Source: Mobula birostris
Taxonomy: Eukaryota
Direction of reading: 5' to 3'
Length of the DNA: 64,000 nucleotides
Assembly: GCF_030028105.1 (NCBI RefSeq)
Contig: NC_092374.1
Span: forward strand, 178,522,057 to 178,586,056
Part shown: piece by piece, positions 7,496-64,000 of the stretch
Position numbering within the stretch: the first letter of the stretch is position 1
Layout: every line of letters begins with the position of its first letter
Made by a program: the position numbers and the translations under genes
The notes under the pieces: model-generated
Seen by the model: only the letters and a program-made list of their open reading frames with translations
Databases searched by the model: none
Told to the model about the DNA's origin: nothing

Positions 7496-7651
7496 TCCCC
7501 AAACTTAATGCTCGGCTGGGACACAGAATCAAATTATATAAAAAATAAAATGAAAATCCACAGATTTATCCACACAACTCTACGGCTTCATTTCCAGGTA
7601 CTCGGTGCTAAGCCTGTTAAAAAAAAAACTAAGCTTTTCCTATACAGGCAG

Positions 7652-7727
7652 CCAATTAGAAGCTTAAGGAAGTCTGATCACCAGTTACCAGGCAGTCTTG
7701 ATGCCTGCAGTTTGAGAAATAGAAACT
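7652..7727 (-). promoter_or_regulatory. MHC class I promoter: ISRE - S - X1 - X2 - Y
   Basis: On the - strand: AGTTTCTATTTCT (7727-7715), CAAACT (7714-7709), 16-bp spacer, CCTGGTAACTGG (7692-7681), TGATCA (7680-7675), CTAATTGG (7659-7652). Order and spacing match the known MHC SXY enhanceosome. Confidence 0.8.
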
Positions 7728-8430
7728 AACAGAGAGGCGCGGCAATTGCTGGTTATGAACAGAAGTTAGAGTCCAGTTTTTTTTTTGTTCTGGAGCCTCG
7801 GATGTTGAGGGGCGGCCTGACAGAGGTGTATGAAATTATGCGAGGCAGAGATACAATAGACATACTGTAGACCTTTTGCCAAGACCTATGATTGTTTTTG
7901 AACTTTATTAACGTTCAGTAACATGCTGACAAGGCTTGGAAGATAGTTCCGGATTAAGGTATAACAGCCCAGGGTTATAATGAGTCTTAATGAGCAATAA
8001 GATACAAATTTCCTCTATGTTCTGTACTGAATTAATTAGCTGCACCACTAATAAAGGGGAGAGGCTCTTCCTAAAGAAGGGTTTGTGATTCAAAATTTTT
8101 ACTGGGTTCTCTTCCCCTCTGATATATCACAAATAAATGAAGGGAATCCCAGCTATTTTCTTAATGCATTTTTGTCTTTTAAGAGTTGTCCCATGTACGT
8201 GGCTGCCCCAATTAACCGGTGGACTAATTAACCAGGGAGTGAACGTTGACTCACACCTTGAGGCCTGCGTCGCGCATTTTCATGCCTTACAAGGTGCAGA
8301 TCCCTCCCTCCCTCCCTAATTAACCAGAACCCAGCATATTTGCCAGACAGCAAATGGTAGGACGTGAAGTGCTTCTCTCTCCAGATGAGGGGCACTTCCC
8401 CTACTAACAGTGACATCTAAACAAATTCCA

Positions 8431-36613: not shown

Positions 36614-39600
36614 ACCCCCAACCCCACCCATCCTTCTGAATTTCATTCAGTGCAAGTCAATAGAGATTAAGCACTCCTCATATATTAAGGAGAGAAGGAA
36701 GAATATGACAGATGAGGAAGAAAAGGCAAGAACAGGTGGTCAGAATTAGTTTTGAACCCAAGTAATGTAATCATTGAGTGCAGAGGAAGGTCTAATCTGA
36801 GACTGTGGTGTGGTCAAAGGGAGGGTGGTAGTGTGACATCCTCAGATACGGGGAGAGTACTACACTGTCAGTGGGGCCATGCACTGTGGAGGGGCAGGTA
36901 GAAGTTGTGGGGTACTGAAGGAGGAGCATTGCACAGTCAGTGGAGCAGACAGCATCTGTCATTGGGGAGAGGTGCTTTGTTATCTCTGAGGAATGCAATG
37001 AAGAAATGGCACTCCATCAGCAGTCAGTTGCAATGCATTGGCAGGGTGTAATTCAGAGGAACACTACTGCATTTCTCAAAATTAGAAAAGTAAGTTCATT
37101 ATATGCAGTACTACAAGTACCACATTAAATGAGGAGGGTAGGGAACAGCCCCTTCAAACAGGTAAAGAGAGGCTGCATCCTCATACACACCATATACTTG
37201 TGACACATGGTCTCTTTCAGCCCACGGAAGTGACAAGCAGCTGGGAAACTTATTACAGAGCTCTCTGTGTCAACATTGGGATATTGCTTTGGTTCCTCAC
37301 TGGGGATGGAAAACATCATGGTCTTTGGGCTCTTGTTAGTGGTGGAAGGTAGTGCTGTTGTTCTAGAGGGAGAGGGTTAGCACAACACAGTGAATTTCTG
37401 GACTTGTGCCGATGAACTGCTTTTTCTTCCTCAAGGAAGAAATGAAATCAAGGTTCCCCCCGCCAAAAAAAAAGAAATTTCATATTGTACTGTCTTCACA
37501 TATATTTTCTTGCAGCACAGGGTAGTCGAGGCCTCTGGGTGAGGACATTCAGGACATGGTTCTGCACCTAATTTTGTGCAACAACAAAGACTCCAGAGAC
37601 AGGGGTGTGGAAGGAAACGGACAGTTGACATATCAAGTCAAAATCCTTCATCTGGATTTGATCCAAAATGTTTAATCTCCATTTCCTTCCACAGACGCTG
37701 CTTAACACTATAAGCTCCCCAAGGAGTTTGGGTGTGGCTCCAGTTTGCAGCATCTGCAGCCTCTTCTGTCCTCCCAGGTAGGGATCTGTTGTCTGAGATG
37801 CAGAGTTACATTTGCTGTGAACTACCCACTGCACCCCAGTCCAACTCCAGCTGAGTAATGTTACACAGATTTTGCCTATTCCACAGAACAGATTAGGAAG
37901 AAGAATAGTTCTTAGTGTGTGCATGAGGAATTCAGAGCAAGTGATAGACAAGTGTGATTGGATGGGCATGGGGCTGTGAAACCTGTGGAGGAATAGAGTT
38001 TAGACTGTTTTGGAAGGCCTGGAATTTAGCAGCAGGAGTTTTGTGTTTGGACAAACAGCAGGGACTTAGATGTTAAAAGGAAAATCCCGAACCAAAGAAA
38101 CACAGAACAGTGCACTGGGAAACAGACTGTCCTTGTTATTCCTCAGGCTGGTGCTACCATGACTGAGAAGGGACAGCAATCAAAACACCTCATGAACCTA
38201 TTTACTATCCTGATCTTCTAACCTGGCCTTTAAACTACTTCCACTAATGGTCTATTTCCCCATAATCATTTTCCAGTTTAATCACATCAATGAGGACCAT
38301 AGGGCAATCTCCAATTTTGTCGTGATTCCCAGAGATTCCTTCTTAAGGTTTTATTTCCCCTCCAAGCCTGCTGATTATTTTTGGTCTCAGTCTTTTACTT
38401 TAAACTGTTTTGCTAATATCTTTCCTATCTACTGCATCCTGGACCCTTACAGCTTTTCATATCTCCCTTCAATATCTTCTGCTCCCAAGAAGCAATTGCA
38501 ACTGCTCAACTGTCCTCAAAAACAAAAGTACCCAGACTTTGCAGATCTCCCCTACACCCTCGCTTGTGCTATATCATCTTTGTAGTTCACATAACACGTT
38601 CCAACTTTACTTGTTGGGCAGGACTCAGTGAGCCCCATGGAGCAGGTCCCATACTGCGGTTCATGGCTATGTTTGCAATAATTGTTGGAGTGATGTAGAG
38701 GAGCAGTTTAGAGATAGCTAAGGCATTACTACAGGTGGGTAAACAGGGATCCATTATCTAATCCTATTTTCTGTCACAGTACTGGACAACCAATCTCTTC
38801 TCATTTTTCCTTTGCAGATAGTGTTTGGCCCTAACTCAAGCGCAGCTCTGAACACAGGGTGGAGCCTCAGCCTGCTCCGGTTATGAATGGCCACATATTT
38901 CAGTAAACTTAGTGTTGTATCAGTGTGGAAGCTGATTAGCTTAATCTTCTGCTGCTTTGCAATGCACCTTTTCACCAGTTTTAATTTCTTCTTACATCTC
39001 ACTCAGAATTCAGGTTTCAGTGTTGTGGTGTGTTGAAATCTGAGCATCTCATCCACAAGGTCTTACCTGAGATGAGTTGCTCTCCTCAACTTTAGCTAAA
39101 ACATCAATATCATATATTAGACCATTGCTGTGAAGGGCTGTGGCCAAGGAAAGTTCGTGGGACAGGCAGAGAAAGCTTTGCTGGGCGATTGGAAGTATCT
39201 CACTGGAAGTGGGAATGCTGTGGACACTGGAGACCCAAAAGTAATTCTTTCCTTAATGGAGATTGGGAGGGTCCAACATTTAGCTTAAAATATGAACAGA
39301 AGCCTCTGGCTAATGGAGCAATTCGGTTTGAGATTTGAGTTGAAAATATCTGAGAATCATAAAAAAATTGTAAATAGATTCATGAATATGTGTGTGGTGA
39401 ACTCTCTCTCCTTCTTGCTTCCCCCAAAGGAGGTTTCTTGCATTCTAACGATCTACCTCTCTCCCTCAATGCCATCAGAGGATGATGCCTCAGTACTCCA
39501 GTGATCCAGACTCAATCCTGATCTCCAGAATTGTCGGTGTGATTTTTTTCACATTGTCCCTGTGACTGCTCAGAGGTTCCAGTTCCTTCCTCTATCTCAA

Positions 39601-44307: not shown

Positions 44308-44737
44308 TTGTATACAGCGACTGGAGACGGTTTGTGGTGATCATCTCCCGGGAGGGTCCTGGAAACCTGCCCAGAGATGTGTCAGTGACTGGGTGTTGCT
44401 GCCTGCGCCTCTCTGTCGCGGTCTGCATGTGCCCACATCCTTACTGGAAGTGGTTCGGCTCCGCATCCTCCACTACACATCCTGTGCCTGGCCGGCTGTC
44501 TACCGGCCCGCCTCCCTCCCTCCCTCCCTCCCCCGCTCCCCCCCTCCCCCTCCTCCCCACTCCAGAGCAGCGGCGGGCTGGTTATTTCTGCAGGAAGATT
44601 TTTAGTTACAGGAGTTCTTACTGGCTGCTCCTTGTAGCAGGCACTATTTACCCCCGAACTGCCTCCGTGAATCTTATCTGCGCCCTCAGCAGTTTATTGA
44701 CCAACGAGTAGATTTGTCGAGGTGAGGAGACATCGCA

Positions 44738-44813
44738 ATGGAGAGTTGGAACGGACCGGGATCTCTCCTTTTCACCATATTGTCTCTCTGCTCTGTTGCG
44801 GGAAGCCAGACAG
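44738..44813 (+). CDS. MHC class I-like gene B, leader exon
   Basis: GCAATGG start, MESWNGPGSLLFTILSLCSVAGSQT + G, donor GTAAGG. Phase 1 joins the alpha1 exon (G|TC = V-SHSL). Confidence 0.78.
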
Positions 44814-45339
44814 GTAAGGCGAGGGTGAGTGATGGTTTTAAAGGTCTGGAGTTGCGCTTTGGAAACTCACCCCTAATCTTCTGGAGATCCCAGACATGCC
44901 CCCATTAGACTGGAGGACTGGTGCATCACACTCATGTGTCCTACAGAAGAAATCCAAGATACTGGGGAATTTTTGGAGTCTATAAGTTCGGGATAAAATT
45001 ATCACTGAAAATGTTCAAGTGGCGTTTGAGATCTGTCGCGGGTTCCAAAAGATCTTTTTTCTCTGTGAAGTTTAATGGCAGTAGGCAGGCCAACATAAGG
45101 TGCATTATCGCCACCTACTGAGTTGGGGTGTGTAATGAAGAGACAGGAATTATATCCACGAAATCACCCCGCCCGCTCCCTCCCACACACACACACACAC
45201 CATCACCAAGAAAACCTCAAACAATATCAAAAAGTCTGATGCTCATCACAATGAAAGTCAATGCTCACTTAAACACATTACATGGCAGTGGTATCCTAAC
45301 AAACTTTCCATGTTTACCTGTGTGCCAAAGATCGCAATT

Positions 45340-46480
45340 TAGCAATGAGAAGTTTCCTTTCCACCTCTTAGGAGCTACATTCAAACAATATATGCTGCAC
45401 TGTTTCTTGACAAATACACTCACTGCAGATGCCAACATCATGCACATTATTCAACTTAGTATGTCCAATATGTAAATGTGTAAGTAAGACTTCTCTCCTT
45501 TTATATCCATCTCCCAGTTGAGTTCCCACCATCCTCTGAATTTTATATAAAAGCCGTTGTTTTATTCCTTTATCCCAACTGAAAAGGTACTTCACCCATT
45601 TCTCCCAGTAATAGTAGAATTTGGGAGATTTGATGGTACCACAACATAATCTGAATGCGTGAGATTGAACTTTATCTCGGGTCTTTAAGACCACTGGTGA
45701 GGCAACACATCCATAATCAAATACAGATTAAAGCAATATACATTTACTTAAGTGACCTCCCACTCACACCCAACTAAGCAACTGAGCACGTTAACGACAT
45801 TTCTCTGGAATTTTATTCACATGCACTGTCCATGTTAGCCTTGTATCCATCTACATACCATCTACAAACAAAAAGCTTCACCAGTATCTCTTGTTTAAGT
45901 GATGTAATATAAAGCTTGAGATCATGTGTGGGTGTAATGTTCCTTTCAGTAAAACAAAATTTAGATTGTCCAAGAGAAAATTTAAACACACACCGACATC
46001 ACCAGTTTTTCTACTTCATTAATAGCTGCCTGCATTTTCCTAACTATTTAATTTATGTCCTTGCCTCTCTTCCACACTGCAGCATTCCTTCATCAGCATA
46101 TAATGATCTGGAAATATCTAAGCCAACAATTAAGAAGATACCATTAATCATAATAAAAAGGAGTGGGGTCCCATTCTCTATTTCATACTCCTCAAAAAAA
46201 GGTGTTTCTACCCTAACTTGTATCTCCTTATCATTTAAAACATCTACCACTTATTGCCATCTTTTCCAGTTTAAGCAGCAACCCTTGTGTCCATAACAAA
46301 TAAGCTCTCTCTGGATCAAAGAAAACTGCCACCACTGGTTCTTTATTAACTTGGGCCTTAAGAATATCAAATTCCAAACTTAATACCAAGTCCATCATCA
46401 TTCTTTCTACGAAATCCAGATGGGTATACAGCCTATAGGAAGCCTTGTGATAACTATTTGTTCCGTTACCTTACATACAT
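45340..46480 (-). mobile_element. I-clade (RNase H-type) LINE fragment
   Basis: IENGTP (RT), FRLCCGTIKSP and HIGHTKLN...CSEC...ETVQHILFEC (C-terminal zinc motif). Confidence 0.65.
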
Positions 46481-46778
46481 GTGAAATTAGCAAAGTAGGT
46501 CTATATAATAATAAGTACTTTATTGATTCCAAGAGGGGAAATCTTTCATTACAGTAGCAGCATTTAAAAACACACAGCAGTGTGCAGACTAACTAACAAT
46601 AATGTACAGCATAATAACATACCAATGTTCAATAAAATGCAATAATAATGTATGAAATAATAAAGCAGGGACTAATGTACTAGGATTTGTGTTCTGTCAC
46701 AATGAGATGAATTGTTGTATATGCTTCAAAGTTGCTGGTGAACGCAGCAGGCCAGGCAGCATCTCTAGGAAGAGGTGC

Positions 46779-46814
46779 AGTCGACGTTTCAGGCCGAGAC
46801 CCTTCGTCAGGACT
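46779..46814 (-). ncRNA. Minimal type I hammerhead ribozyme motif (Penelope)
   Basis: AGTC-CTGACGA-AGG(GTCTCGG)CCT-GAAA-C-GTC-GACT on the - strand. Confidence 0.8.
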
Positions 46815-49800
46815 AACTGAAGGAAGAGTGAGTAAGGGATTTGAAAGTAGGGGGGGAGGGGGAGATCCAAAATGATAGGAGAAGACAGGAGGGGGAGGGA
46901 TAGAGCCAAGAGCTGGACAGGTGATAGGCAAAAGGGGATACGAGAGGATCATGGGACAGGAGGTCCGGGAAGAAAGACAAGGAGGCGGGGGGGGGGGGGA
47001 AGACCCAGAAGATGGGCAAGAGGTATATTCAGAGGGACAGAGGGAGAAAAAGGAGAGTGAGAGGAAGAATGTGTGCATAAAAATAAGTAACAGATAGGGT
47101 ACGAAGGGGAGGTGGGGCCTTAGCAGAAGTTGGAGAAGTCGATGTTCATGCCATCAGGTTGGAGGCTACCCAGACGGAATATAAGGTGTTGTTCCTCCAA
47201 CCTGAGTGTGGCTTCATCTTTACAGTAGAGGAAGCCATGGATAGACATGTCAGAATGGGAATGGAATATGGAATTAAAATGTGTGGCCACTGGGAGATCC
47301 TGCTTTCTCTGGTGGACAGAGCGTAGATGTTCAGCAAAGCGGTCTCCCAGTCTGCGTCGGATCTCACCAATATATAAAAGGCCACACCGGGAGCACCAGA
47401 CGCAGTATATCACCCCAGCCGACTCACAGGTGAAGTGTTGCCTCACTTGGAAGGACTATTTGGGGCCCTGAAAGGTGGGAAGGGAGGAAGTGTAAGGGCA
47501 TGTGTAGCACTTGTTCCGCTTACACGGATAAGTGCCAGGAGGGAGATCAGTGGGGAGGGATGGGGAGGACGAATGGACAAGGGAGTTGCGTAGGGAGCGA
47601 TCCCTGCGGAATGCAGAGAGAGGCGGGGAGGGAAAGATGTGCTTAGTGGTGGGATCCCGTTGGAGGTGGCGGAAGTTACGGAGAATAATATGTTGGACCC
47701 GGAGGCTGGTGGGGTGGTAGGTGAGGACCAGGGGAACCCTGTTCCTAGTGGGGTGGCTGGAGGATGGAGTGAGAGCAGATGTACGTGAAATGGGGGAGAT
47801 GAGTTTAAGAGCAGAGTTGATAGTGGAGGAAGGGAAGCCCCTTTCTTTAAAAAAGGAAGACATCTCCATCATCCTAGAATGAAAAGCCTCATCCTGAGAG
47901 CAGATGCGGCGGAGACGGAGGAATTGCGAGAAGGGGATGGCGTTTTTGCAAGAGACAGGGTGAGAAGAGGAATTGTCCAGATAGCTGTGAGAGTCAGTAG
48001 GCTTATAGTAGACATCAGTGGATAAGCTGTCTCCAGAGACAGAGACAGAAAGATCTAGAAAGGGGGGGGAGGTGTCGGAAATGGACCAGGTAAACTTGAG
48101 GGCAGGGTGAAAGTTGGAGGCAAAGTTAATAAAGTCAACGAGTTCTGCATGCGTGCAGGAAGCAGCGCCAATGCAGTCGTCGATGTAGCGAAGGAAAAGT
48201 GGGGGACAGATACCAGAATAGGCACGGAACATAGATTGTTCCACAAACCCAACGAAAAGGCAGGCATAGCTAGGACCCATACGGGTGCCCATAGCTACAC
48301 CTTTAGTTTGGAGGAAGTGGGAGGAGCCAAAGGAGAAATTATTAAGAGTAAGAACTAATTCCGCTAGACGGAGCAGAGTGGTGGTAGGGGGGAACTGATT
48401 AGGTCTGGAATCCAAAAAGAAGCGTAGAGCTTTGAGACCTTCCTGATGGGGGTTGGAAGTATATAAAGACTGGACATCCATCGTGAAAATAAAGCGGTGG
48501 GGGCCAGGGAACTTAAAATCATCGAAAAGTTTAAGAGCGTGAGAAGTGTCACGAACATAGGTCGGAAGGGATTGAACAAGGGGGGATAAAACCGTGTCGA
48601 GGTATGCAGAAACGAGTTCGGTGGGGCAGGAGCAAGCTGAGACAATAGGTCGGCCAGGACAGGCAGGTTTGTGGATCTTGGGTAGGAGGTAGAAACGGGA
48701 AGTGCGGGGTGTGGGAACTATAAGGTTGGTAGCAGTGGATGGGAGATCCCCTGAGCGGATAAAGTCAGTGATGGTGTGGGAGACAATGGCCTGGTGCTCC
48801 TCAGTGGGGTCACGATCGAGGGGTAAATAAGAGGAGGTATCCGCGAGTTGTCACTGTGCCTCGGCAAGGTAGAGGTCAGTACGCCAGACTACAACAGCAC
48901 CCCCCTTATCGGCGGGTTTAATAATAAGGTTAGGATTAGTGCGGAGGGAGTGGAGAGCAGAGCGTTCCGAAGGAGTGAGGTTGGAATGGGAACAAGGTGC
49001 GGTGAAGTCGAGACTGTTGATGTCCCGTCGGCAGTTAGCGATAAAGAGATCCAGAGCAGGCAGAAGGCCAGAGCGGGGTGCCCATGAAGAAGAGGAGGGT
49101 TGAAGACGGGAGAAGGGGTCATCGGTGGGGGTGGAAGAGTCCTTGCCGAAGAAGTAGGCTCGGAGACGGAGACGGCGGAAGAAAAGTTCCGCATCATGGC
49201 GAACACGGAACTCGCTGAGATGTGGGCGAAGGGGGACAAACGTGAGGATCCGGGTCCAACATATTATTCTCCGTAACTTCTGCCACCTCCAACGGGATCC
49301 CACCACTAAGCACAGCTTTCCCTCCCCCCCCCCCCCCAAGCCCCGCATTCCGCAGGGATCGCTCCCTACACAACTCCCTTGTCCATTCGTCCCCCCCATC
49401 CCTCCCTACTGATCTCCCTCCTGGCACTTATCCGTGTAAGCGGAACAAGTGCTACACATGCCCTTACACTTCGTCCCTTACCACCATTCAGGGCCCCAAA
49501 CAGTCCTTCCAGGTGAGGCAACACTTCACCTGTGAGTCGGCTGGAGTGATATACTGCGTCTGGTGCTCCCGATGTGGCCTTTTATATATTGGCGAGACCC
49601 GACGCAGACTGGGAGACCGCTTTGCTGAACATCTACGCTCTGTCCGCCTGAGAAAGCAGGATCTCCCAGTGGCCACACATTTTAATTCCACATTCCATTC
49701 CCATTCTGACATGTCTATCCACGGCCTCCTCTACTGTAAAGATGAAGCCACACTCAGGTTGGAGGAACAACACCTTATATTCCGTCTGGGTAGCCTCCAA

Positions 49801-50134
49801 CCTGATGGCATGAACATCGACTTCTCTAACTTCCGCTAAGGCCCCACCTCCCCCTCGTACCCCATCTGTTATTTATTTTTATGCACACATTCTTCCTCTC
49901 ACTCTCCTTTTTCTCCCTCTGTCCCTCTGAATATACCTCTTGCCCATCCTCTGGGTACCCCCGCCCCTTGTCTTTCTTCCCGGACCTCCTGTCCCATGAT
50001 CCTCTCGTATCCCCTTTTGCCTATCACCTGTCCAGCTCTTGGCTCTATCCCTCCCCCTCCTGTCTTCTCCTATCATTTTGGATCTCCCCCTCCCCCTCCT
50101 ACTTTCAAATCCCTTACTCACTCTTCCTTCAGTT

Positions 50135-50170
50135 AGTCCTGACGAAGGGTCTCGGCCTGAAACGTCGACT
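50135..50170 (+). ncRNA. Minimal type I hammerhead ribozyme motif (Penelope), sense to gene B
   Basis: Intact CTGACGA and GAAA cores, stem I AGTC/GACT, stem II AGG/CCT, GTC cleavage triplet at 50164-50166. Confidence 0.82.
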
Positions 50171-51135
50171 GCACCTCTTCCTACAGATGCTGCCCGGCCT
50201 GCTGCATTCACCAGCAACTTTGATGTGTGTTGCTTGAATTTCCAGCATCTGCAGAATTCCTGTTGTTTGTTGTATATGCTTATTGCATTTGGTAGGAATG
50301 ATTTTCTGTAGCAATCCTTATGACGGCAGAGCTGAATGAGTCTATTCGAAAAGGTGCTCCGCTACTTATTCCGTAGGTAATGGAGAGGATGTTCCAGATT
50401 GTCTATAATGGATAACAGTTTGTTTTGTGACCTCCTCTCCACCATTTAGTCAAAAGAGTCTGGTTTTGTAGCCAAGGCCGGATCCAGCCTTTGTGATGAG
50501 TTTATTTAGTCTTTTTGCATCACCAGCTCCAATGCTGCTCCCCCAACAAAAAGCAGCAAAGAAGACTTGCTACAACAGACTGGTAAAAGATCTACAATAT
50601 CCTGCTACACACGTTGAAGGATCTCAGCTTCCCTAAATTTCAACCACAATTGACTCATAAACAACCCCAAACTCCAAAAGTCTACTGTATATGCTATCCC
50701 ATTTTTGGCAAATGTAGACACTCCTCCATTGCCCATTTTCCGATCATGGCTTATGTTAACATAACTTTGTATTTTGAGACTGACAGGATTTCAACCAGGT
50801 TTCCTGTACACATGACATCAAGTTTATTTGGTAAATCTGCAATAAATTTCTTATCCTCTTGACCACTAGCTAACAGGCTTCTAGAATTCCATTGTAAGAT
50901 TAAATGCCATTAACAACTCTCTTTTGAAATGTGAACATTTTTACTCCTTGAAAGGCATCATTAATAGCTTCTAGTATTTTATGTCAATGTTTTTCTTCTG
51001 CTTTTCACATAATTTTAATATTTGTCCTATTTCAGTTTGTGCTGTACAATTTACCACATCTGCCATGAAAGTTTATCAACAATTAGAGAATCCTTTGTTA
51101 TACAATTATGTACTTTACACAATGCCACTAAACTA

Positions 51136-51753
51136 CAAGAGGTGATTGATAAGTTCGTGGCCTCAGGTTGCAGGAGTCAGTTTTAGAATACCTAGCACAT
51201 TTATTTTTCCTACATTTACACACTTAGTCCAACAATTGTGGAACATACGGATCCCTTCAGTGTAGAAGCCTGTTGGACCTCCAGAAAGTGGTCCACGGCA
51301 CGGGTTATTGATAAGTTCATGGCCTGAGGTAGAAGGAGATATTATTAACTTCAAACTTTCTGCATTTTCACTCAAAGAGTTGAACTGCACGTGCATGCAA
51401 CAAGAGCTGTATAACCCATCTCCTTCTACCTAAGGCCACAAACTTAACAATCACGCCTGCTGTGGACCACCTGGAGGTCCAAGACGCTCTCATTACATGC
51501 ACGTGCAGTTCAACTCTTTGAGTGATAATGCAGAAAGTTTGAAGTTAATAAATCCGCTCCTTCTCCCTTAAGCCACGAAGTTATCAATCACCCCTGCTGT
51601 GGACCACTTCTACAAAGAAGGGATCTGTATGCTCCACGACCGCTGGACTATGTGTGTACATGTAAAAGAGGACTATGTTGAAAAATAAATGTGCTAGGTT
51701 TTCTAAAATTGACTCCTTCTACCTTGGGCCATGAACTTGTCAATCACCCCTTG
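51136..51753. mobile_element. Mariner-derived foldback MITE
   Basis: TA flanks (51134-51135, 51754-51755), TIR CAAGAGGTGATTGATAAGTTCGTGGCC, internal TIR copies. The arm encodes the mariner C-terminus FYKEGI..L..RW..C....DYVEK*. Confidence 0.85.
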
Positions 51754-52419
51754 TATCTGCATTCTGGATGTTAGTAGATCCCATTGATACTGTCTTCTAT
51801 ATTTTCTGCAGAGCCTCTGCATATGATATACCTATTTCCACCTGAAAATGCTGCCACTTCCACAACATTATGCAGGACATCCTGGATAATCAGAGCTACG
51901 TTTTCCTCCACAGTTGCTACAAATCCTTAGTTACTGTGATTGATTTATATTGGAAGCAGATCCACATTCAAACCTCAACAAAACCTTAAACTCTTCCTTC
52001 CTTCTTTTATTTAAATCCTATCTACTGCCTTCATCACTGGAAGATAAGCCTCTACAATCTTCAATAAGCTATTTATTTTTCCGTTTCCCAGAAATCTGCC
52101 ATTTGACCTCCTCCAGTCGCTACCTCTGAGATCTCCGTCACTTCCTGCCATCTCTACCCCCTTCCTGCCTGAGAGAAAACTCCCAACAGTGGGCTTAGTC
52201 CATTGTTCCAACCCCAATCAGCTTAATTAGCTTGGTGGATGACTTGCGAGCGTACGCAAACCTTCCCAGCCCCTCAAATGCCCAAAGATGACAGCCGCAT
52301 CACCTTAACACAGACATCACACTAGAACAATTAATCTAATCTTAACTGCCCCATTAAGACAGTCTGTTACACGTCACCAAGGAAATAGATTTTGTTCGAC
52401 CCAAAGACCTTGCCTTCCT

Positions 52420-54950
52420 TTCTTTTTCAATCTCTTTATTAATTTCATAGAATATAAACATAACATAGTGTACGGGGTCTTTCTTTTGTTACATTTAAAA
52501 TGGCGACTTTGTTATGTTAATCTGGGGAATGCGGCTTTGTTGTGCTTTAACGCTGAAGAGAGTTTGCGCTAGCAGTTTGTTTTACTTTAAATTGAGATAG
52601 CAGCCTTCTATTAGCCAATGGGTGGTTACGTATCGTTTTGTTTTCGGATACCATGCTGTATTTGAATGACTGTGGACGGAGTTTTGACAGGGAGTCGGAG
52701 GAGAGACGAGGAGGACGGAGGAGAGACGGGGGTGTGGTCGGAGGAGAGATGGGGGGGTTGGAGGAGAGACGGGGAGGACAGCGGACGTGTGAAGAGGCTC
52801 CGGTCGATCATTCCGGGTGGTCCCGAGCCGTGAGTCGACTGAATTCGGGTGGTCGTCAGGAATCGATTGAGCTCCAACGATAGCGCACGAAGAACGTGGA
52901 CTTTGATAAGTGTTGGTGCCTTATTTTTCTATTACTTTCCTCTCTGTATCAAATGTATATTAATGTCATAGAATTAGTAATATCTATAAAGTGTACTTGT
53001 TAAAATTTACTGGGTGTGCTGGCTGATGATTGATGTTGTGATTGATTCGGGCGGCGACCAACCGTGTGGGGAGTGTTGAGGCGGGTGCTGGGCTGGATTT
53101 CCCCTAGACATACACGAGCTAATATAACTGAACGTTACAATAGCAATAATACAACATTGTTGGGAATACATTGTTATACTTAAGATGGGTAATTATAAAA
53201 CCAAAAAGTATTTCATTGACAAAATTCCCAATCATGTAGGATACCAATGAATAACACAGGACAAAAAAAATTATCTAAACAAAAATCATAAAAAAGGAAA
53301 AAAAATAAAAACAGACCTCCCCCCCCCAAAAAAAATAATCCAAACAGAATTAATCAACTAAACTAAAAAAGACATGGGCAAATTTAACAACGTAAAAATG
53401 GAAGAAAAGAAAACTTTAGTGTCGATGACTCCGTTCCTCTCAACCAACACTACAGAGAAGTAAAATAAGTTTGGAAATGGTCAAATTACATCATATGAAA
53501 ATGCTGAATAAATGGCCTCCAAGTTTTTTCAAATTTAATGGAAGGGTCATAAACCACACTTCTAATTTTTTCCAAATTTAAACACAACATGGTTTGTGAA
53601 AACCAGTGAAATACAGTAGGAGGGTTAATCTCTTTCCAATTCAGCAAAATGGATGTTCTAGCCATTGAACAAAGAAATGCAATCATCTGATGAGCTGAAG
53701 AGGTTAAATGATTTGAGTCTATCATTGGTAATCCAAAAATAGCAGTAATTGGGTGAGGTTGTAAAGTCTGTATTCAAAACCATTGAAATAATATCAAAAA
53801 TATCTTTCCAATATTTTTCCAACAAAGGACATGACCAAAACACGTGAGTTAAAGAAGCTATCTTGGAATGACATCAATCACATTTTGGATTAATATAAGA
53901 ATAATAACGAGATAGTTTATCTTTGGACATATGAGCCCTGTGCACTACTTTAAACTGTATCAACACATATAGAGAATGAATTAACCAATTGAAGAATTTT
54001 TCCCATTTTTCAATTGGTATAGTAATCTTAAATTCTCTTTCCCAATCAGTTTTACTTTCATTGGAAACATCAGGACATAAATTCATAATTAGGTTCTAAA
54101 TAATTGCTACAACACTTTTCTGAGAGAGATTTAGATCTAAAATTTTTTCCAAAATATCCGTTGGATATAAGTGTGGAAAATTAGGAGAAACAGTAATTAT
54201 AAAGTTTCTGATCTGCAGGTATCTAAAAAAGTGAGATCTGGGTAAATTATATTCATTGGAAAGTTGATCAAAGGACATGAAACAATTATCCAAAAATAAA
54301 TCACGAAAACGTACTATACCTTTGATTTTCCAATCAAAGTAACTTGGTCCATAGTGGAAGGTTGAAAAAGGAAATTAGATATAATAGGGCTTGCTAAAAT
54401 AAATTGATTGAACCCAAAAATCCTTTGGAATTGAAACCATATACATACAGTATGCTTAACTATTGGATTATTCATTTGTTTATACAATGTAGAAGAAATA
54501 AAAGGAAGCAAAGTTCCTAAAACCGAACCCAAAGAAGACCCTTGTAATGAATTACATACAAGATTTACCCAATGTGGACTTGAAGTTGCATCCAAATCTC
54601 GTAACCAAAATTTTAAGTATCGGATATTAATTGCCCAATAATAAAATCTAAAATTCGGGAGGGTGAGCCTCCCCTCTTTTTTAGATTTCTGTAAATACCT
54701 TTTACCTAGCCTAGGATTTTTTTTCTGCCATATATATGAGGAAATTTTTGAATCAACATTATCAAAAAAAGATTTTGGGGTAAAAATTGGAACCGATTGA
54801 AATACATATAGAAATTTAGGCAAAATAATCATCTTAATAGCATTAATCCGACCAATCAAAGACAAAGATGTTGGTGACCATTTAGTAAACAAGAGTTTAA
54901 TCTGATCAATTAAAGGTAAAAAATTAGCTTTAAATAAATCTCACCCTCCT
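52420..54950 (-). mobile_element. L1-type ORF2 3' fragment and 3' UTR
   Basis: SLIGRINAIKMIILPKFLY, LPNFRFYYWA, HMFWSCP, FEKTWRPF. Confidence 0.88.
52469..53139 (+). mobile_element. Solo LTR (671 bp) in the L1 3' UTR
   Basis: TGTA...TACA ends; TSD ATAG at 52465-52468 and 53140-53143; shares blocks with the 12031/42122 LTR family (aaaatggc, tgcgctagc, ttgataagtgt...gcc, tttccctaga). Confidence 0.87.
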
Positions 54951-55409
54951 CATTGGTCCGCATGCCTGTAATGGACCAAATGGCCTGTCTTTGTGTGGTC
55001 TGGCTATACGATGTTAAGAACTTTACTCTCATTCGTCAAAAATGATACTTGCTCGATTGTGACAATATCTTGACCAAATGTATGGTGTTTTCTCTGAATG
55101 TAGTCATTAACTGAGGAAACGCAGCTGCTAATCTGTAAACATCAAGATCCTTTGAAGTATTTTGTGATATCCTGTTTGGCTTTTGGTGACATTAGTTGAG
55201 AGCTCCTATGAATGTTGTGTGGGGGAGGTAACTCGCTAATTAGAGCCATGGTTTACCTGCAGAGGCAGACAGGGGCTCCACCTAACCTAACACCTTTCCC
55301 AATGCACTGTTCCCTCAGAGGCTTAAGTATCAAGCGGGGCAGAAATGTGACGATCTTTAGTGTGGGAGGTGAGCGTGTGACCCACAAAACCACAGCTGGG
55401 ACACCAATT

Positions 55410-55640
55410 CAAGATGGTTGGTGTAGCAGCTGGCAAAACTGTGAGATCGGGGGGTCAGCTTCCACTGCTGTCAGTAAGGAGTTTGTATGTTCTCCCCGTA
55501 ACCTTGTTACTTTCCTCCGGATGCTGTGCTTTGCCCCCATTGTCCAAAGATGTACGATTTAGGATTAGTGAGTTGTGGCCATGCTATGTGGACACTAGGA
55601 ATGCAGGAACACTTACCGGATGCTCAACAGCTGTTTTAAT
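55410..55640 (+). mobile_element. Elasmobranch-type SINE (HE1/V-SINE-like core); other copies near 3140, 22750, 31720, 41350-41700
   Basis: ggagtttgtatgttctccccgt...tttcctccggatgc...ccaaagatgt core. Confidence 0.6.
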
Positions 55641-58394
55641 TTGATGCAATCTGCATTCAAAGGTTCAAAAGGACATTTAATGTCAGAGAAATATTTCAAT
55701 ATACATCCTGAAATGCTTTTTCTTTACACCTATCCACGAAAACAGAGGAGTGCCCCAAAGAATGAACAACAGTTAAATGTCAGAACCCCAAAGTCCCCCT
55801 CAGCTCCCCTCCTTCCCGCACATCAGCGGCAGCAAGCAACAATCCCCCCTTCCCCCCACCGGCAAAAAAAAACATCTGCATCCACCACCGTGCACTCGAG
55901 CGTGAACAAGACAACAGTAAAGACAAAGACTTGCAGTGCAGTACTCCAAAGACTACATTGTTCACCCAGCATTTGACATACCACAGGCTCTCTCTCTCCC
56001 TAATAAAGGAGAAGTGCGGTCTCTGTTTCACGGCGAGAGGGGAGATATAACAAACAACTCGCTAGTTTACGACATTAAAAGTCCCGTTGCGTTTCATTTT
56101 TACGAGCTCTGAGCCCAAAGATATCAGGTCTCTGGGCACACAGCCGTAGATCTTCCGACTCTCCTGACGACACACGGATCTCCTGCCGTGACACCGACTT
56201 TCGATCCACTGCTCTCCAGAGCCCCGAGATCCTAGGCCTCTAAAGACAAGCTGAAATCTTAGGCTGGAGCCCTTGGCGTGCCGAACAGCGGCCAGTTGTG
56301 AAACCCGAGAGTGGGTCCCTCTCCCACAAAGAACCATAGTCAGCATGTAACTGCAGGTCAGAGTCTTCAAAAGGACCCTGAAAGGGAAAAATAAGAGATA
56401 TTAAAGATGGAAATACTGTAGAGCTGTTTCCGAAGAGGCAAACAAAGGAGTCACCGTTAGGCGCCATATTTTCCTATGTTTGAAAGTGTATGTGTAACCC
56501 AGGTTAATTAAACCCAAAGACGTAATGTTAGAAAGTTCCACCTGTGGAGGGATGAAAATGAAGTTTACCAAAGAGAACTTGAAAAAAAATGCTGTGCGAG
56601 AACAAGGCGTGGCTGACGCAGGCACGGAAGGAGAGAGAAACGCAGAAACGATTAGAAGCTGAAGACATTAACTGTTAAGAGTGGAATTATTAATGCATAG
56701 CTTTACCCTAGTAACTTGAAAATCTCAGGGTGAAACCCCTGCAGAAGAGACAATAGTGATCAAAGATTTATTGAAGCTACGGCTATAACATGCAGCAGCA
56801 AAAACGGGACAATATCAGCAGAGGCGAGTGTCCAAGATCTCTACCGTGTAACTGGACATTAGTTTTATAAAATCATACCAAGGGATTTGGTCAAGTTTTT
56901 GTGCAAGTTTGTGAATTGACTTGCCGTGGATGATAAACTATATTAGTCCAATGAGCCAAGAAAGAAGATGGTGAGCTACTCAAGATTCAATGAGCCAGCG
57001 CAGGAACGAAATGTGTAATGACGCAAAGGATTTAATATGGTTGGATGTGTAAATTCATTTTCATTCAAAGAATCCAAATTAGATTTTCTGAAAGAACTGA
57101 TTATTTACAAAGACTTTGATAAGTCGCTGAATGAGATTTACTTTGTTTAAAAGTTCTAAAGTTGCAGAATTACGAAAGGGATTAAACCGTATATATAATT
57201 TTTGAATTTCAGTTTAAACTTGTAGATACACTGGAACTGAAACTGAAGTTAATTATAATACTTAAAAATGGGAATTATGTTTGGTTTTCTAACTAACTAG
57301 GGATAAGTAAAAAGGAAAAGGTTGTCTGTAAACTTTTAAATAGGGAACTACACTAGATCTAATTAGTTCGAGAAATTAGAGTCATAAAGGAATCTCACTG
57401 ATTCTAATTAAAAAGGAATTTGTTTTGGTTTGATATCTGAATTTAGAACCTAAACAGAATGTTGGAATTTTGAATTGTTCTTGCTCATGTAAATAGTTTG
57501 TACATATTGTTGTTTTCTTATAAACAGAACTTATCTCCAGAAGTATGTGGTTTCTATTCACTGCCTCCTTCCGATACCTAGAAGCTTCTGATGGCCTACT
57601 AGCACCCAGTGTAGTACTATGTAATTTGATTTTCTCAACGAGTGCAGCGACTAGTTGCACACAATAAGACAGGTGCTACAGTGGTGTTACATATGTGGTA
57701 AATGAAGCTTCATTTTAAAAATATTTTATTTGCTTTATTCACTCATGGACGTGGATTCACAAAGTGAACCACTGTTTAGTTCCCCAACCCAAGATGTCCT
57801 TGAGAAGGTGGCTGGTTGCTGCCTTTTTGAACTGGTGCAGTACTCGAAGTGTGGATATATCCACAATGGTGTTCAGGTCCGGATAGTACTAAGTCTATGC
57901 TCTCTCAATTTTGGACAAGCCCTCAGTTAGTCAGTGTCAAGAGTGGTTGCTACATCCTCACAGCACAGAAGCAGGCACTTACACCCAACAGGTCCATGTC
58001 AGCCAAGATTACCATCCAACTTGGCTCATTTGACTCATATCCCTCTAAACATTTCCTATCTGTGTACCTATCCAAGCATCTTCAATAGTGATACCCAGGT
58101 TGCTCAATAGTTTGGAGGATTGGGACCCTTCATTTCCTGTCCCCACTGCAGTTGGGTTCTTCTATCCAGAGCTGCTTAGGATTTATACCTGGCTGATGCA
58201 GTGAGGCCTGTTTTAGTGTTGGTGGTTCCACGTGGATGGGGAGCCAATCACAGGGGTGAGGTGGGTGCCTAATTTGTGTGCCTGTGCATTAATTTGGGCA
58301 AGTGGAGAGTCTTCCACCAGAGTTTTGCCTTATAAATGGAGGGCATCCTTAGTTATTTTCTCACACTCCTCTCTCACTCTCTTCTTTTTTTCAG

Positions 58395-58643
58395 TCTCCC
58401 ACAGCTTGACATATTTCTACCTCCATTCGATAAACATTCCTGAGCTGCCATACATCTCCATGGTTGGGATGTTGGATGACCTGCAGATATGCTACTATGA
58501 CAGCACCATCCAGAGGGTAGAAGCCAAGCGACAGTGGATCATGGACGGCTTTTCAGCTAACGACTGGAAAAACCAGAAAGAGATCCCGGACGCAATTAAA
58601 AAGTTACTTCCTCCTAATCTGACTCCATTCGCCTCGATGCTTG
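58395..58643 (+). CDS. MHC class I-like gene B, alpha1 exon (249 nt)
   Basis: (V)SHSLTYFY...P....VGMLDDLQICYYDS...RQWI...W; acceptor TTTTTTTCAG|, donor |GTACGT, both phase 1. Confidence 0.93.
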
Positions 58644-60621
58644 GTACGTGTCTTTTGATTTCCGCTGTTCTTCGAGGCTCACAGTGACTTGCACACTGAA
58701 AACACGTTGACCTTTCAATGGACCAAAGTAGGTTGTATCAGTTTTAAAATTCCTATCCTTGGTTTCAAATCTTTCAAGGGTTATATGCCTTCCCGACATC
58801 CTCTAACACATATTTACCTTCAATTAAAAGCATTCCATCTGTATCCCACATTTGCAAGAGAAATTTTGCCCTTCAAAAAAAACTGAGAATCTATTTCTGA
58901 GAACCCAGTGCTCATTCCACACCGATCTCCTCCGAGAAATAATGAGAATCAGACCCACTGCCTCTCTGGCTTCGCACGGGTCAAGCAAACATAAGTTAAT
59001 ATAAAGTAAAATTCAAATATATTACGTGTAATTTGCATGTGTACAAAAACATAATGATACTTATGCAAATTGGGAGAAAAATCATGAGAAGTAATGTTGG
59101 GGTTTTTCAGCTTGGTTCAAGAACCTGATGGCAGTGGAGGGAAAGGTGCTAAACCTTGAGGTGTGGGTTTTCTGGCTACTGTAACTCATGCTTGATGGCA
59201 GCATGGGGAAGAGGACACGGCCCTGATGGTGGTTGTCCCTGCTGAAGAATGTCACCTTCACTGGTAAATGTCCTCCATCGGAGAGAGTTTCAATACTAGG
59301 ACGTGATTTCTATAAATTTGTCAGAGTTTTCAATGACATGCTGAATCTCCTTAGACTTCTAAGCAAAGATGTTGGTGTGCTACCTTCTCCACACACTGAT
59401 ATGCAGTACACAGTCCTTCATCATGACCCCTGCATTATATCATGCAATGATATACACTCTGTACAGATCACCCCCTCCACCAACAATATTCCACTGTGCC
59501 ACACTCTCATGCTCACGTTCATTACTGATCCTGTCATGTGTACCACACACTGCATGCAGAACACTGTGATCCCATGCTCTTTGCCATTGCTTTGTGTGCT
59601 TCATGGTAAATTGCTAAATTGATTTGTTATTGTCGTATCTGCTAAGGTCCAGTGAAAAACTTCGTTTTGCACACCATCTGTACATGTCATTTCGTTAACA
59701 CAGTACATTGAGGTGCAAGAGGAAGCAATAACAGAATGGAGAATGAATTGTTACAGTCATAGAGAAAGTGCAATGAAAGCAGACCATAAGGTGTAAAACC
59801 ATAATATGGGTGTTTGTGAGGTCAGGATTTCATATTATTGTACCAGGGGATTATACATAGACTGATAACAGCAGGATAAAAGCTGCCCTTGACCCCGGTG
59901 ATATATGTTTTCAGGCTTTTGTATCTTCTGCTCTATGGGATGGGGAAGAAGAGAGAATGTCATCGAACACAGAAGAGCGCAACAGTGTTGTGCTGAACCG
60001 GCTAAAAAGCTAATCAAAAACACCCAAACACTAATCTGTCCTACCTACACCACATCCATATACATCCATCCTCCTTATATCAATGTACCTATCCAAATGT
60101 CTCTTAAAGTCCTTTAATGTATTTGCCTCTACCACTGTACTAGGCATCCATGACTCTGAGTAAAGAAAAGACTTACCCCTCAGATCCGTCTTGAACCAAC
60201 ACCTCTCACCTTCTATGCATGTCCTCTGGTGTTAGACATTTCAACCCTGGGAAACGGATGCTCTCTAATCATGTCTCTGTTTAACCTCTATCAGAAGGTT
60301 GTCTTATCTTTTCATCCCCGTCCTTCTTTCTAACCAGGAACATACTTTTCCTGTACTCTAGAAATTGATATTTAAACACACTCCACATGTCTATTGTAGA
60401 TTTGCCAGAGAAAAAGTGTTCTCAATTAACGCTTCTTAGTACCTGCCTAATGCCCTTATAATTTGCCCCACCCCAATTTAAAGCTGGTGGATGGATGGGG
60501 TCTTTGATTTTGTTGTCTGATTTACTGAAGCAGCGAGAAATGTAGATAGAATGTGCGGAGGGGGGCGCTGTGTGTGCTGATCTGTGTCCATAACTTTCTG
60601 CAGTTTCTTGTGATCATGAGC

Positions 60622-60826
60622 CAACCAGTGGCCTAGTGGCATCAGCACTGAACTTCTGAGCGAAGGCTCCCGAGTTCGAATCCAGCCGTCTCCCTTGCAC
60701 GCTTTCCATTCATGCTGGGTTGAGCGTCGAGCTAGCAACTCGGCCTCTTTAAAAATAAGAAAGCCGGCTAAAAAAACACCATCATGACGGCGTCCCAGTG
60801 ACTCCACTCGGGCTTTCTTCTTCTTC
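60622..60826 (+). mobile_element. tRNA-derived SINE with (TTC)n tail and 17-bp TSD, in intron 2 of gene B
   Basis: A box TGGCCTAGTGG, B box GAGTTCGAATCC; TSD TTCTTGTGATCATGAGC at 60605-60621 and 60827-60843. Confidence 0.85.
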
Positions 60827-61049
60827 TTCTTGTGATCATGAGCAGACCTGATGCCATACCAAGCTGTGATGCCTATATTGTACATCAATAAGCATGACTG
60901 AGGGTCAAAGGGGACATGTCATATACTTCACCCTACTGAGACAGTGCACATTGTATTTACATGTTTAGCAAGACATTATGCAGGTGGGAATGGTTGAAGA
61001 ATTCGAATATTCAGCCACTAACACAGATTAACCTGTTGGTCCTTTCCAG

Positions 61050-61319
61050 GCATCAGATACATCCAGGGGCTTCTGGGCTGCACGCAGTCTGCAAATACAT
61101 TCAAAACCTTCCTCAAGATTGGCTGCCAAGATTTAGGAGAGCTCATTTGTGACTTCACTACCGGGAAGTGTATTACCACTGGTGTCCTGATGTTGGTCAA
61201 TGATTATCTTCAGCAAGTTAATATTGCTGATATTCCTGAAATTTATATGCTGAACAGTAGCTGCATCCAGTATTTGAAGAAAGGTCTTCGGCTTGGCAGA
61301 GAGGAGCTTGAAAGGCAAG
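61050..61319 (+). CDS. MHC class I-like gene B, alpha2 exon (270 nt; absent from the ORF track)
   Basis: Stop-free frame (G)IRYIQGLLGCTQSANTFKTFLKIGCQDLGELICDFTTGKCITTGVLMLVNDYLQQVNIADIPEIYMLNSSCIQYLKKGLRLGREELERQ. Keeps Q96, C101, C164 and the C..YL...L..G...L.R end pattern. Acceptor CCTTTCCAG|, donor AG|GCAAGT, both phase 1. Confidence 0.88.
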
Positions 61320-62104
61320 GCAAGTGGAACATCTGATTACATACTGTAAGCTCTGTGAGGGAACTCCTGCTTCAGACAATTGATGGACTTCTGATCTGAG
61401 ATGTTCAGGGGTGTCTTGACACAAATAGATGGGATCAGCCTGATTCTGAGTTTGTGAGAGAGTTTTTGATTCAGCACAATGAGGGGACTCACAATCAAAG
61501 TGACATGACCAAATTTGGTGAGCAGTGTTCTGGTCTAAGAAGATGAGAGAGGTCCCAATCTGCGACACTGGGGGATCTCCCAATTCTGAATGGTGAGCAA
61601 TGTCCTTATCTGGGGTGAAGGGTACCTCAACTGAAGGTGACTAATGATGTCCAAGTCAAGGATTGTGTTGGAACTTCTATTTAGACACAGTAACAGATCT
61701 CCCAATCCAGGACATTGAGGGCATCTCTTGATCAGGAATTTTGAAGGATCTCCCAATTAAGGCTGGTAAACCAAACTTAATTTGGGGTGATTATGGCATG
61801 ATCAATCTTGGAATATGAGGTAATATTGACTTGGGACTATGGGTGACATAAAGATTGGTAACGGTGGCTGTAACCTTGATCTAGGCCTGTCAGATGAATG
61901 AAAATTACTGCTGGCTATGGTCTGCATGGACTTGAGCTGAGGAGATGATTTCGGGCAGGATAGTGATTAATGGTGAGGTAGGTCCTGGTCTGAGGCAGTA
62001 AAGAGTAAGAATCCCACTCTTGGACACTGTAACTTCCATTTGTAATGGTAAGATAATATAAGTTTGTGTTGACTTAGTGACGTTAATTCTTCATTCTTCC
62101 CTAG

Positions 62105-62380
62105 TTGCTCCAGAGGTTCAGGTGTTGAAAAAGAGGCCAACAGCTACTGAGGGCGAGAGTCTGTCATGCATCATCACTCCCTTCTACCCCCGTGCTATCA
62201 ATGCCACTTGGCTGAAGAATGGACAGGTTGTCTCCAAGGGCTACGAGGTGACCGTGCTACCAAACTACAATGATACATACTGGATGGAACTAGTCATTGA
62301 GCTGCAGGATAATGATACGAACATCTATACCTGTCATGTCAAGCACAGCAGCCTGCCGGGGGCACTGATGGTGCAGGGAG
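62105..62380 (+). CDS. MHC class I-like gene B, alpha3 (Ig C1) exon (276 nt)
   Basis: (V)APEVQV...LSCIITPFYPRAINATWLKNG...LPN..DTY...YTCHVKHSSL; acceptor TTCCCTAG|, donor |GTAGGT, both phase 1. Confidence 0.95.
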
Positions 62381-62960
62381 GTAGGTCATCGTACGGTACA
62401 GAATTTGCTTCATTCTGTTGTGGTGGCTCATAAATTCATACAGTACTGAAGGAGGCCATTTGGCTCACCACATACATGCTGACCCTCTGGTGCCAGTCTA
62501 TTCCAACCAGTACTTGGTCTGTACTTCGGCCTTCTCTTCCTCGATGATTCAAGTGCTTGTCAGAATTATGATATGAAAATTGATCTTTTGCAACAGCAGT
62601 ACAGTGCAAAGACATAAAAGGCGTATGAGCTTAGAACATGGACCAACTCATGAAATTATGATACTGTAGCTATAGGTGAGATTTACTAGCTGGAGGGAAG
62701 ACTGCCAGCCCAAGGTGTGTGGATGAGAAGAGTATGTAGGTCTAGACCCAGGTGTGGATTGAAGGGAATAAGCAAAATGGCATTTTGACAGACTAGATGG
62801 GCCAAATGGACTGCTTCTGTGCTGTAGTGCTCCATGACTGAAAGATAACATAAATTATAAAATGAAGTAATTAGTGCAAAAATTGGAATAATGAGGTTGT
62901 GTTCATGGGTTCATGACTATTCATGAATGGTAGAAGAAAAGAAGATGTTTCTGATTAGTG

Positions 62961-64000
62961 CAACACACATAAAAGTTGCTGGTGAACGCAGCAGGCCAGG
63001 CAGCATCTCTAGGAAGAGGTGCAGTCGACGTTTCAGGCCGAGACCCTTCGTCAGGACTAACTGAAGGAAGAGTGAGAAAGGGATTTGAAAGTTGGAGGGG
63101 GAGGGGGAGATCCAAAATGATAGGAGAAGACAGGAGGGGGAGGGATAGAGCCAAGAGCTGGACAGGTGATTGGCAAAAAGGATACGAGAGGATCATGGGA
63201 CAGGAGGTCTGGGAAGAAAGACAAGGAGGGCGGGGGGACCCAGAGGATGGGCAAGGGGTATATTCAGAGGGACAGAGGGAGAAAAAGGAGAGTGAGAGAA
63301 AGAATGTGTGTATAAAAATAAGTAACAGATGGGCTACGAGGGGGAGGTGGGGCATTAGCGGAAGTTAGAGAAGTCGACGTTCATGCCATCAGGTTGGAAG
63401 CTGCCCAGACGGAATATAGAATGAAAAGCCTCATCCTGAGAGCAGATGCGGTGGAGATGGAGGAATTGCGAGAAGGGGATGGCATTTTTGCAAGAGACAG
63501 GGTGAGAAGAGGAATAGTCCAGATAGCTGCGAGAGTATCCCCTTCCCGCAATTCCTCCGTCTCTGCCGCATCTGCTCTCAGGATGAGGCTTTTCATTCTA
63601 TGACGAGGGAGATGTCTTCCTTTTTTAAAGAAAGAGGCTTCCCTTCCTCTACTATCAACTCTGCTCTTAAACGCATCTCCCCCATTTCACGTACATCTGC
63701 TCTCACTCCATCCTCCCGCCACCCCACTAGGAATAGGGTTCCCCTGGTCCTCACCTACCACCCCACCAGCCTCCGGGTCCAACATATTATTCTACGTAAC
63801 CTCTGCCACCTCCAACGGGATCCCACCACTAAGCACATCTTTCCCTCCCCGCCTCTCTCTGCATTCCGCAGGGATCGCTCCTTACACAACTCCCTTGTTC
63901 ATTCGTCCCCCCCCATCCCTCCCCACTGATCTCCCTCCTGGCACTTATCCGTGTAAGCGGAACAAGTGCTACACATGCCCTTACACTTCCTCCCTTACCA
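62961..64000. mobile_element. Penelope-like element with inverted architecture, running off the window
   Basis: - strand terminal repeat 62961-63410 matching 46727-47180, an internal strand switch at 63417-63600, then + strand RT C-terminal region. Confidence 0.88.
63023..63058 (-). ncRNA. Minimal hammerhead ribozyme motif (Penelope)
   Basis: Same 36-nt motif as 46779-46814. Confidence 0.8.

Follow-up and report, generated by a model that had tools for sequence, protein, structure and literature searches.

Sharks and rays share nonclassical lineages of major histocompatibility complex (MHC) class I genes. UFA is known from both groups (PMC10751288, PMC12562908), as is UGA (PMC12562908). UFA maps to the MHC-Ib cluster and has a binding region resembling that of CD1 (PMC10751288), and it has been described as single- or low-copy (PMC12562908). 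Crystal and mass-spectrometry data, given as a personal communication in a review, point to lipids like those of human CD1d in UFA (PMC12562908). Together, UFA and UGA are the grounds for thinking that lipid presentation of the CD1 type may date back to the origin of jawed vertebrates. We analysed a 64,000-nucleotide (nt) window of the Mobula birostris contig NC_092374.1 (positions 178,522,057 to 178,586,056, forward strand; coordinates below count from its first letter), which carries a real, intact-looking nonclassical class I gene, here called gene B, at 44738-62380. The original prediction, made from the sequence letters, had proposed gene B as a candidate new lineage. By every sequence test available, it is almost certainly a ray member of UFA.

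Gene B thus opens neither a new lineage nor a new mechanism. Its modest novelty lies in how large and how old the ray expansion around it is, in the private substitutions of its sub-branch, and in a probable mis-annotation. It supplies exact exon coordinates, including a GC-AG intron missed by gene predictors and open reading frame (ORF) tracks, and adds evidence that the lineage expanded in rays. We place the reading as a whole, that gene B is a UFA member and a working gene acting as proposed below, at a probability of about 0.8; that this particular copy works in that way is, taken by itself, fairly probable.

Exon structure and lineage of gene B

The exons of gene B and its long first intron lie as follows:

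44738-44813, + strand: leader (signal peptide) exon; ATG, 25 codons plus 1 nt, phase 1, GT donor
44814-58394, + strand: intron 1; 13.6 kb, retroelement-filled
58395-58643, + strand: alpha1 exon; 83 residues, AG acceptor, GT donor, phase 1
61050-61319, + strand: alpha2 exon; 90 residues, AG acceptor, GC donor, phase 1
62105-62380, + strand: alpha3 exon; immunoglobulin (Ig) C1-set, 92 residues, AG acceptor, GT donor, phase 1

Joined, the four exons make up 871 nt that read as 290 stop-free codons, and encode a 25-residue signal peptide followed by 83, 90 and 92 residues; the in-frame, stop-free splicing that had been foreseen was thereby confirmed. The GC donor of alpha2 sits in a strong context (AAG/GCAAGT). 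As had also been pointed out, alpha2 is missing from the ORF track, because the 104-codon stop-free stretch that contains it (61022-61333) has no early start codon. Domain models recognize the gene unevenly. Alpha3 is a clear Ig C1-set domain (Pfam, E 1.7e-15) and alpha1 gives a sub-threshold Pfam MHC_I match (gene B scores 26.2 bits against a threshold of 28.3). The alpha2 stretch has no Pfam match and is recognized only through the PDB entry 8GM8.

That entry, titled 'Crystal structure of shark nonclassical MHC CLASS I, UFA' in the Foldseek library (released 2024-11-27), was the best PDB match of each domain searched alone: alpha1 at E 1.7e-14, alpha3 at E 3.2e-23, and alpha2 at E 4.6e-8, where it was the sole significant match and the unusual cysteines align. 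For the whole mature chain we queried phmmer with residues 289-581 of a RefSeq protein (P0131:289-581) whose alpha1-alpha3 is identical to that of gene B. Chain 8GM8_A matched at 2.8e-62, followed by 9CH4, titled UGA in the same library, at 1.8e-31; the remaining class I, MR1, CD1 and ZAG chains came in at 1e-26 or weaker. Over alpha1-alpha3, gene B and nurse-shark UFA (8GM8) are ~40% identical. An AlphaFold2 model of gene B built on a 57-sequence alignment was confident (predicted local distance difference test, pLDDT, 92.4; predicted template modelling score, pTM, 0.84), and its top Foldseek match was again 8gm8_A (template modelling score 0.85/0.89).

Phylogeny agreed. The main maximum-likelihood tree (IQ-TREE, LG+C20 with posterior mean site frequencies, PMSF) held 53 rows and a quick tree 71 rows; UAA and the 9CH4-matched UGA lineage were represented, and named UEA, UCA and UDA reference sequences were not among the rows. 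Gene B and nurse-shark 8GM8 (P0126) fell in one UFA clade supported at 100/100, which the quick tree recovered with a Shimodaira-Hasegawa-like approximate likelihood ratio (SH-aLRT) of 100. UGA, UAA, a shark-only multi-copy clade and teleost sequences all lay outside it. Within UFA, batoids formed a subclade (100/99), in which gene B paired with the M. birostris paralog XP_072113434.1 (P0102; 100/99), and the pair joined Hemitrygon akajei P0001 (100/100). The three form a branch whose sister group comprises every other sawfish and stingray copy (98/91), and which is for that reason an old sub-branch.

The placement bears directly on the idea of a new nonclassical lineage, or of a ray member of shark UEA. 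In favour of that idea are the sub-threshold Pfam score, the lost peptide anchors described below, and the inconsistency of the automatic NCBI names in the family, which run from MR1-like through CD1d-like to HFE homolog. Yet gene B shares a 100/100 clade with the PDB-named UFA, its relatives turned up in all shark and ray genomes that gave matches, and the shark-only multi-copy clade, whose members lack both alpha2 disulfide cysteines that gene B keeps, does not include it. We consider a new lineage or a UEA gene highly improbable. Phylogeny had been named beforehand as the test that could overturn the novelty claim, and it did: gene B belongs to a described lineage with the same features, and its suggested UEA type was not upheld either.

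UEA nonetheless resembles gene B in being nonclassical and multigene, with a hydrophobic predicted groove; it lies in the MHC-Ib cluster, to which UFA also maps. The shark-only multi-copy clade (P0159-P0221), which differs from gene B in the points just given, is probably UEA or UBA, an identification made without a named reference. All 10 of its sampled members lack the two canonical alpha2 disulfide cysteines, with V where C101 would be and L, F or Y in place of C164, and the clade has no close PDB relative.

UGA is the sister lineage of UFA with weak support (85/49 in the careful tree, SH-aLRT 89 in the quick tree). Like UFA, it has hydrophobic helices, occurs in sharks and rays, and has been reported together with UFA as CD1-like. 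It differs in being ~27-30% identical to gene B, and one gene was returned per species, including P0146 of M. birostris. Membership of the CD1 family was considered for gene B and rejected: Pfam PF16497 (MHC_I_3) scored 22.2 bits against a 35-bit cut-off, identity to primate CD1b is ~25%, and orthology is not demonstrable.

Groove, lineage features and proposed working

Residue calls in the groove were made from a MAFFT alignment against shark classical UAA, with UAA references identified through a 2e-94 match to the nurse-shark UAA structure 6LUP. Among the residues that classically anchor peptide termini (Y7, Y59, R/Y84, T143, K146, W147, Y159 and Y171), gene B keeps Y7 only. Y59 is replaced by D, Y159 by M and Y171 by G; T143/K146/W147 read V/Y/L; and the R84/N86 region lies within a deletion of 4 residues where alpha1 ends. 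A one-column shift in the alignment decides whether E or L stands opposite Y123; neither choice gives Tyr. The anchor losses listed in the original prediction were therefore recovered, save that its L at Y123 holds under one choice of column. Its description of aliphatic-rich helices also stood up, and its view that peptides are probably not bound conventionally was supported. The AlphaFold2-predicted helices have a mean Kyte-Doolittle hydropathy of -0.34, compared with -0.85 in UAA, and a charged fraction of 0.25 compared with 0.34. These features support a groove unable to hold peptide termini in the classical manner, and a hydrophobic ligand is likely.

Several features tie gene B to UFA at large. 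Besides clade membership, the predicted fold and the loss of most anchors, the lineage has a second pair of alpha2 cysteines, which fall at residues 117 and 124 of the mature chain (119 and 126 in the model). The pair is conserved in 8 of 9 shark UFA rows and most ray UFA rows; UGA, UAA and the shark multi-copy clade have F/L and W at the same positions. In the AlphaFold2 model the two cysteines face each other on adjacent strands (E115-120 and E125-128), which makes a cross-strand disulfide beside the canonical alpha2 disulfide plausible. The alpha1 C-terminus is 4 residues shorter throughout UFA, removing the classical N86 glycan site.

The lineage also ends unusually, in ~16 hydrophobic residues and no cytoplasmic tail. 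Of the complete family models examined, a single Narcine isoform departs from this pattern, and all others, including XP_072115050.1 and XP_072113434.1 of M. birostris, show it; UGA, UAA and the shark multi-copy clade retain both a transmembrane segment and a tail. In the identical twin of gene B described below, alpha3 is followed by 26 residues consisting of small residues, a polar spacer (EPRGAG), a hydrophobic run and a stop. Such a layout, in the twin and in other relatives, looks like a glycosylphosphatidylinositol (GPI) anchor signal. It resembles the ends of the mammalian GPI-anchored class I-like proteins Qa-2, ULBP/RAET1 and MILL, which likewise have small residues, a short polar spacer and ~16 hydrophobic residues; those are unrelated lineages, and GPI attachment of UFA is a prediction.

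Other features set the gene B sub-branch apart from shark UFA. Private to it are the D in place of Y59 and a cysteine at mature residue 109, where an aromatic residue is conserved elsewhere. A further cysteine, at residue 33, is found in gene B and M. birostris P0102 only. Cys109 and Cys33 are probably unpaired, because their strands are not neighbours in the class I sheet.

By homology with UFA, from the nurse-shark structure and published statements, the gene B chain would pair with beta2-microglobulin through its normal C1-set alpha3. Its groove, unable to clamp peptide ends, would hold a hydrophobic and probably lipid ligand, as UFA is reported to; the ligand data concern shark UFA. Judging from the tails of relatives, the product may be held at the cell surface by a GPI anchor in place of a transmembrane segment and cytoplasmic tail, where T cells or other innate-type receptors could read it. 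The proposed action is that of CD1: association with beta2-microglobulin, a hydrophobic groove and, from the literature on UFA, lipid ligands. The differences are that UFA is MHC-linked and that CD1 spans the membrane and carries an endosomal-sorting tail. A GPI-type anchor would put gene B in the outer leaflet without such a tail, so loading would have to differ from that of CD1.

Expansion in rays and transcription of gene B

An exhaustive HMMER search with alpha1 returned 101 proteins at E <= 0.001, the best being an H. akajei protein 71% identical in alpha1. We defined the family by word-indexed searches from this protein and from the best shark match. These returned one UFA gene per species in sharks (Cetorhinus, Carcharodon, Mustelus, Pristiophorus, Heterodontus, Chiloscyllium, Scyliorhinus, Heptranchias and Ginglymostoma, whose 265-residue entry corresponds to the 8GM8 chain). 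In rays, by comparison, Mobula birostris, M. hypostoma, H. akajei, Hypanus sabinus and Pristis pectinata each have several; Narcine and Amblyraja returned one each. UFA-clade gene models number at least six in M. birostris and at least six in H. akajei. The UFA lineage is expanded to a multigene family in rays. The gene B ectodomain is 85% identical to its H. akajei relative, and the persistence of an open relative at this distance in a dasyatid stingray argues that the sub-branch has been maintained over a long time.

One could go further and see in the UFA of myliobatiform rays an expanded and diversifying family of at least two old sub-branches, with that of gene B marked by a remodelled A-pocket end (Y59 to D) and a free cysteine in the platform floor (mature residue 109). 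We advance this fuller version tentatively, with the odds against it. If the ray copies are functional, they would constitute a polygenic, possibly GPI-anchored system presenting lipids or small ligands, without a counterpart described in sharks.

One ray model contains the gene B ectodomain twice. The RefSeq protein XP_072115050.1 (P0131; 'uncharacterized protein', 581 residues, M. birostris, assembly GCA_030028105.1) consists of two tandem alpha1-alpha2-alpha3 cassettes and then one tail, and each cassette is 100% identical in protein to alpha1-alpha3 of gene B. Its gene range covers 150 kb and encloses a 318-residue family member on the opposite strand. We suggest from this layout that the predictor probably fused two near-identical genes into one model. 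The model does not use the 44738 leader of gene B but a different one, in which 3 of 25 residues are changed. The suspicion that gene B might be mis-annotated was thus half right: RefSeq does model the gene, within the fused two-cassette model only. Neighbour gene lengths gave no consistent placement of gene B as cassette 1 or cassette 2 of the 150-kb model.

Could the two identical cassettes be an assembly duplication, with haplotypes or a collapsed repeat laid in tandem and gene B and its twin a single locus? The complete protein identity of cassettes spread over 150 kb speaks for it, as does a repeat-rich region with an N gap. Against this, the cassette leaders differ, and several clearly different paralogs occupy the same cluster, such that we regard duplication of this kind as rather improbable; it would in any case leave the identity of gene B unchanged. 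XP_072113434.1 is 96.6% identical to gene B, and its leader differs at one residue. The leader peptide of gene B is identical to that of M. hypostoma XP_062905767.1. This model (285 residues, no tail) and M. hypostoma XP_062894932.1 (198 residues, most of alpha2 missing) look truncated.

RNA bears out the exon set. Same-species contigs of 846 and 914 nt join 58643/61050 and 61319/62105 with 0 mismatches, and the second junction is compatible only with a GC-AG intron, so that the unusual donor is used in RNA. Contigs spanning alpha1-alpha3 reach 145-213 nt upstream of alpha1. Others cover the final 94 nt of alpha3, reach the donor at 62380/62381 and then run on for 405 and 1573 nt, in sequence found nowhere in 62381-64000. 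The alpha1-alpha2-alpha3 exon set is therefore transcribed and correctly spliced, with downstream exons after it. In run X5, from a related species, one contig at 61049-61375 crosses the GC donor into the intron, which reflects either unspliced pre-mRNA or genomic DNA in an RNA run.

Five observations weigh against gene B as a working UFA gene. First, the low-copy trait of UFA does not extend to rays, where the family is multi-copy; the trait is descriptive rather than defining. Second, the RNA contigs are not assignable to gene B, given the second cassette with identical protein. Third, eight words sampled from the leader stretch (44690-44813) scored 0.00 in the same-species runs X1, X3 and X10. 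Because of the absent leader words and the identical cassette with another leader, transcription of the gene B copy itself is unproven; the RNA check that had been proposed thus delivered spliced alpha1-alpha2-alpha3 transcripts, but no leader words in the same-species runs. Fourth, the transmembrane and cytoplasmic exons expected to the right were not there: 62381-64000, which reaches the window end and is mostly a highly repeated retroelement, holds neither a transmembrane nor a tail exon. The tail exon lies beyond the window, within which gene B runs from the leader to alpha3. Fifth, the exons differ from related-species transcripts at 10 sites, of which 7 are nonsynonymous (alpha1 5/5, alpha2 1/3, alpha3 1/2); the count is small, and diversifying selection and relaxed constraint fit it equally.

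Much of this would follow if gene B were a silent or decaying recent duplicate and the transcripts came from the identical sister cassette with its own leader. The missing leader words, the different leader of XP_072115050.1 and the tail lying outside the window suit such a duplicate, and an orphan tail exon at 38620-38698 points to gene debris in the cluster. Other evidence cuts the opposite way. All four exons are open with good splice sites, alpha1-alpha3 is identical to transcribed sequence, and the leader peptide is preserved in the M. hypostoma relative. Words from the leader stretch also occur in related-species runs, at 0.25, and eight sampled words make their absence elsewhere a weak test. 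We judge a silent or decaying duplicate unlikely, and favour gene B as a functioning UFA member.

Surroundings of gene B

The window and its neighbourhood carry further class I genes and many repeats. Other features in the window are:

262-486, - strand: alpha1 exon belonging to another class I gene (gene A); Pfam MHC_I 2.5e-10
near 7500-7730, - strand: leader/promoter region of gene A
38620-38698, + strand: orphan UFA-type tail exon; AG acceptor, 25 codons, stop, GPI-signal-like hydrophobic end
47120-48481 (- strand) and 49513-49839 (+ strand): inverted retroelement copies in intron 1, with GIY-YIG-like ORFs at 47120-47446 (-) and 49513-49839 (+)
62900-64000: further copy of the same retroelement, just after alpha3

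Upstream of gene B, a C/T-rich tract (CCCT/CCCC repeats) occupies 44500-44565 on the + strand, ~180-240 bp before the leader ATG. A motif scan of the 800 bp upstream of the leader found neither an interferon-stimulated response element (ISRE) nor a clear SXY module, and the promoters of genes A and B showed no similarity to each other in a self-BLAST of the window. The end of the orphan tail exon resembles the type seen in the other ray UFA sub-branch. Across the whole window, the + strand upstream of this exon showed no alpha1-alpha3 exons; it could be left over from a lost copy, or it could terminate a gene whose intron is very long.

Two sawfish relatives, P0103 and P0107, have automatic names matching MHC-Ib cluster entries on NC_067438.1 in the PMC10751288 supplement, a match by name only. 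The supplement labels those genes only 'MHC-Ib', without lineage names.

Gene A alpha1 keeps Y7, a YW motif and the N-glycan site at the alpha1 end, and gene A could be UDA. Its best matches (57-60%) include the first unit of a fused catshark model, XP_072329338.1, which shares a 90%-identity cluster with a catshark UFA fragment. This hints at a conserved adjacency of gene A and UFA in sharks.

The retroelement ORF gave a weak match to a GIY-YIG endonuclease (E 0.0017), as in Penelope-like elements, and intron 1 also holds other reverse-transcriptase-like ORFs. The copy at 62.9-64 kb was matched by very abundant contigs in the RNA runs, with a word depth of 10^4-10^5.

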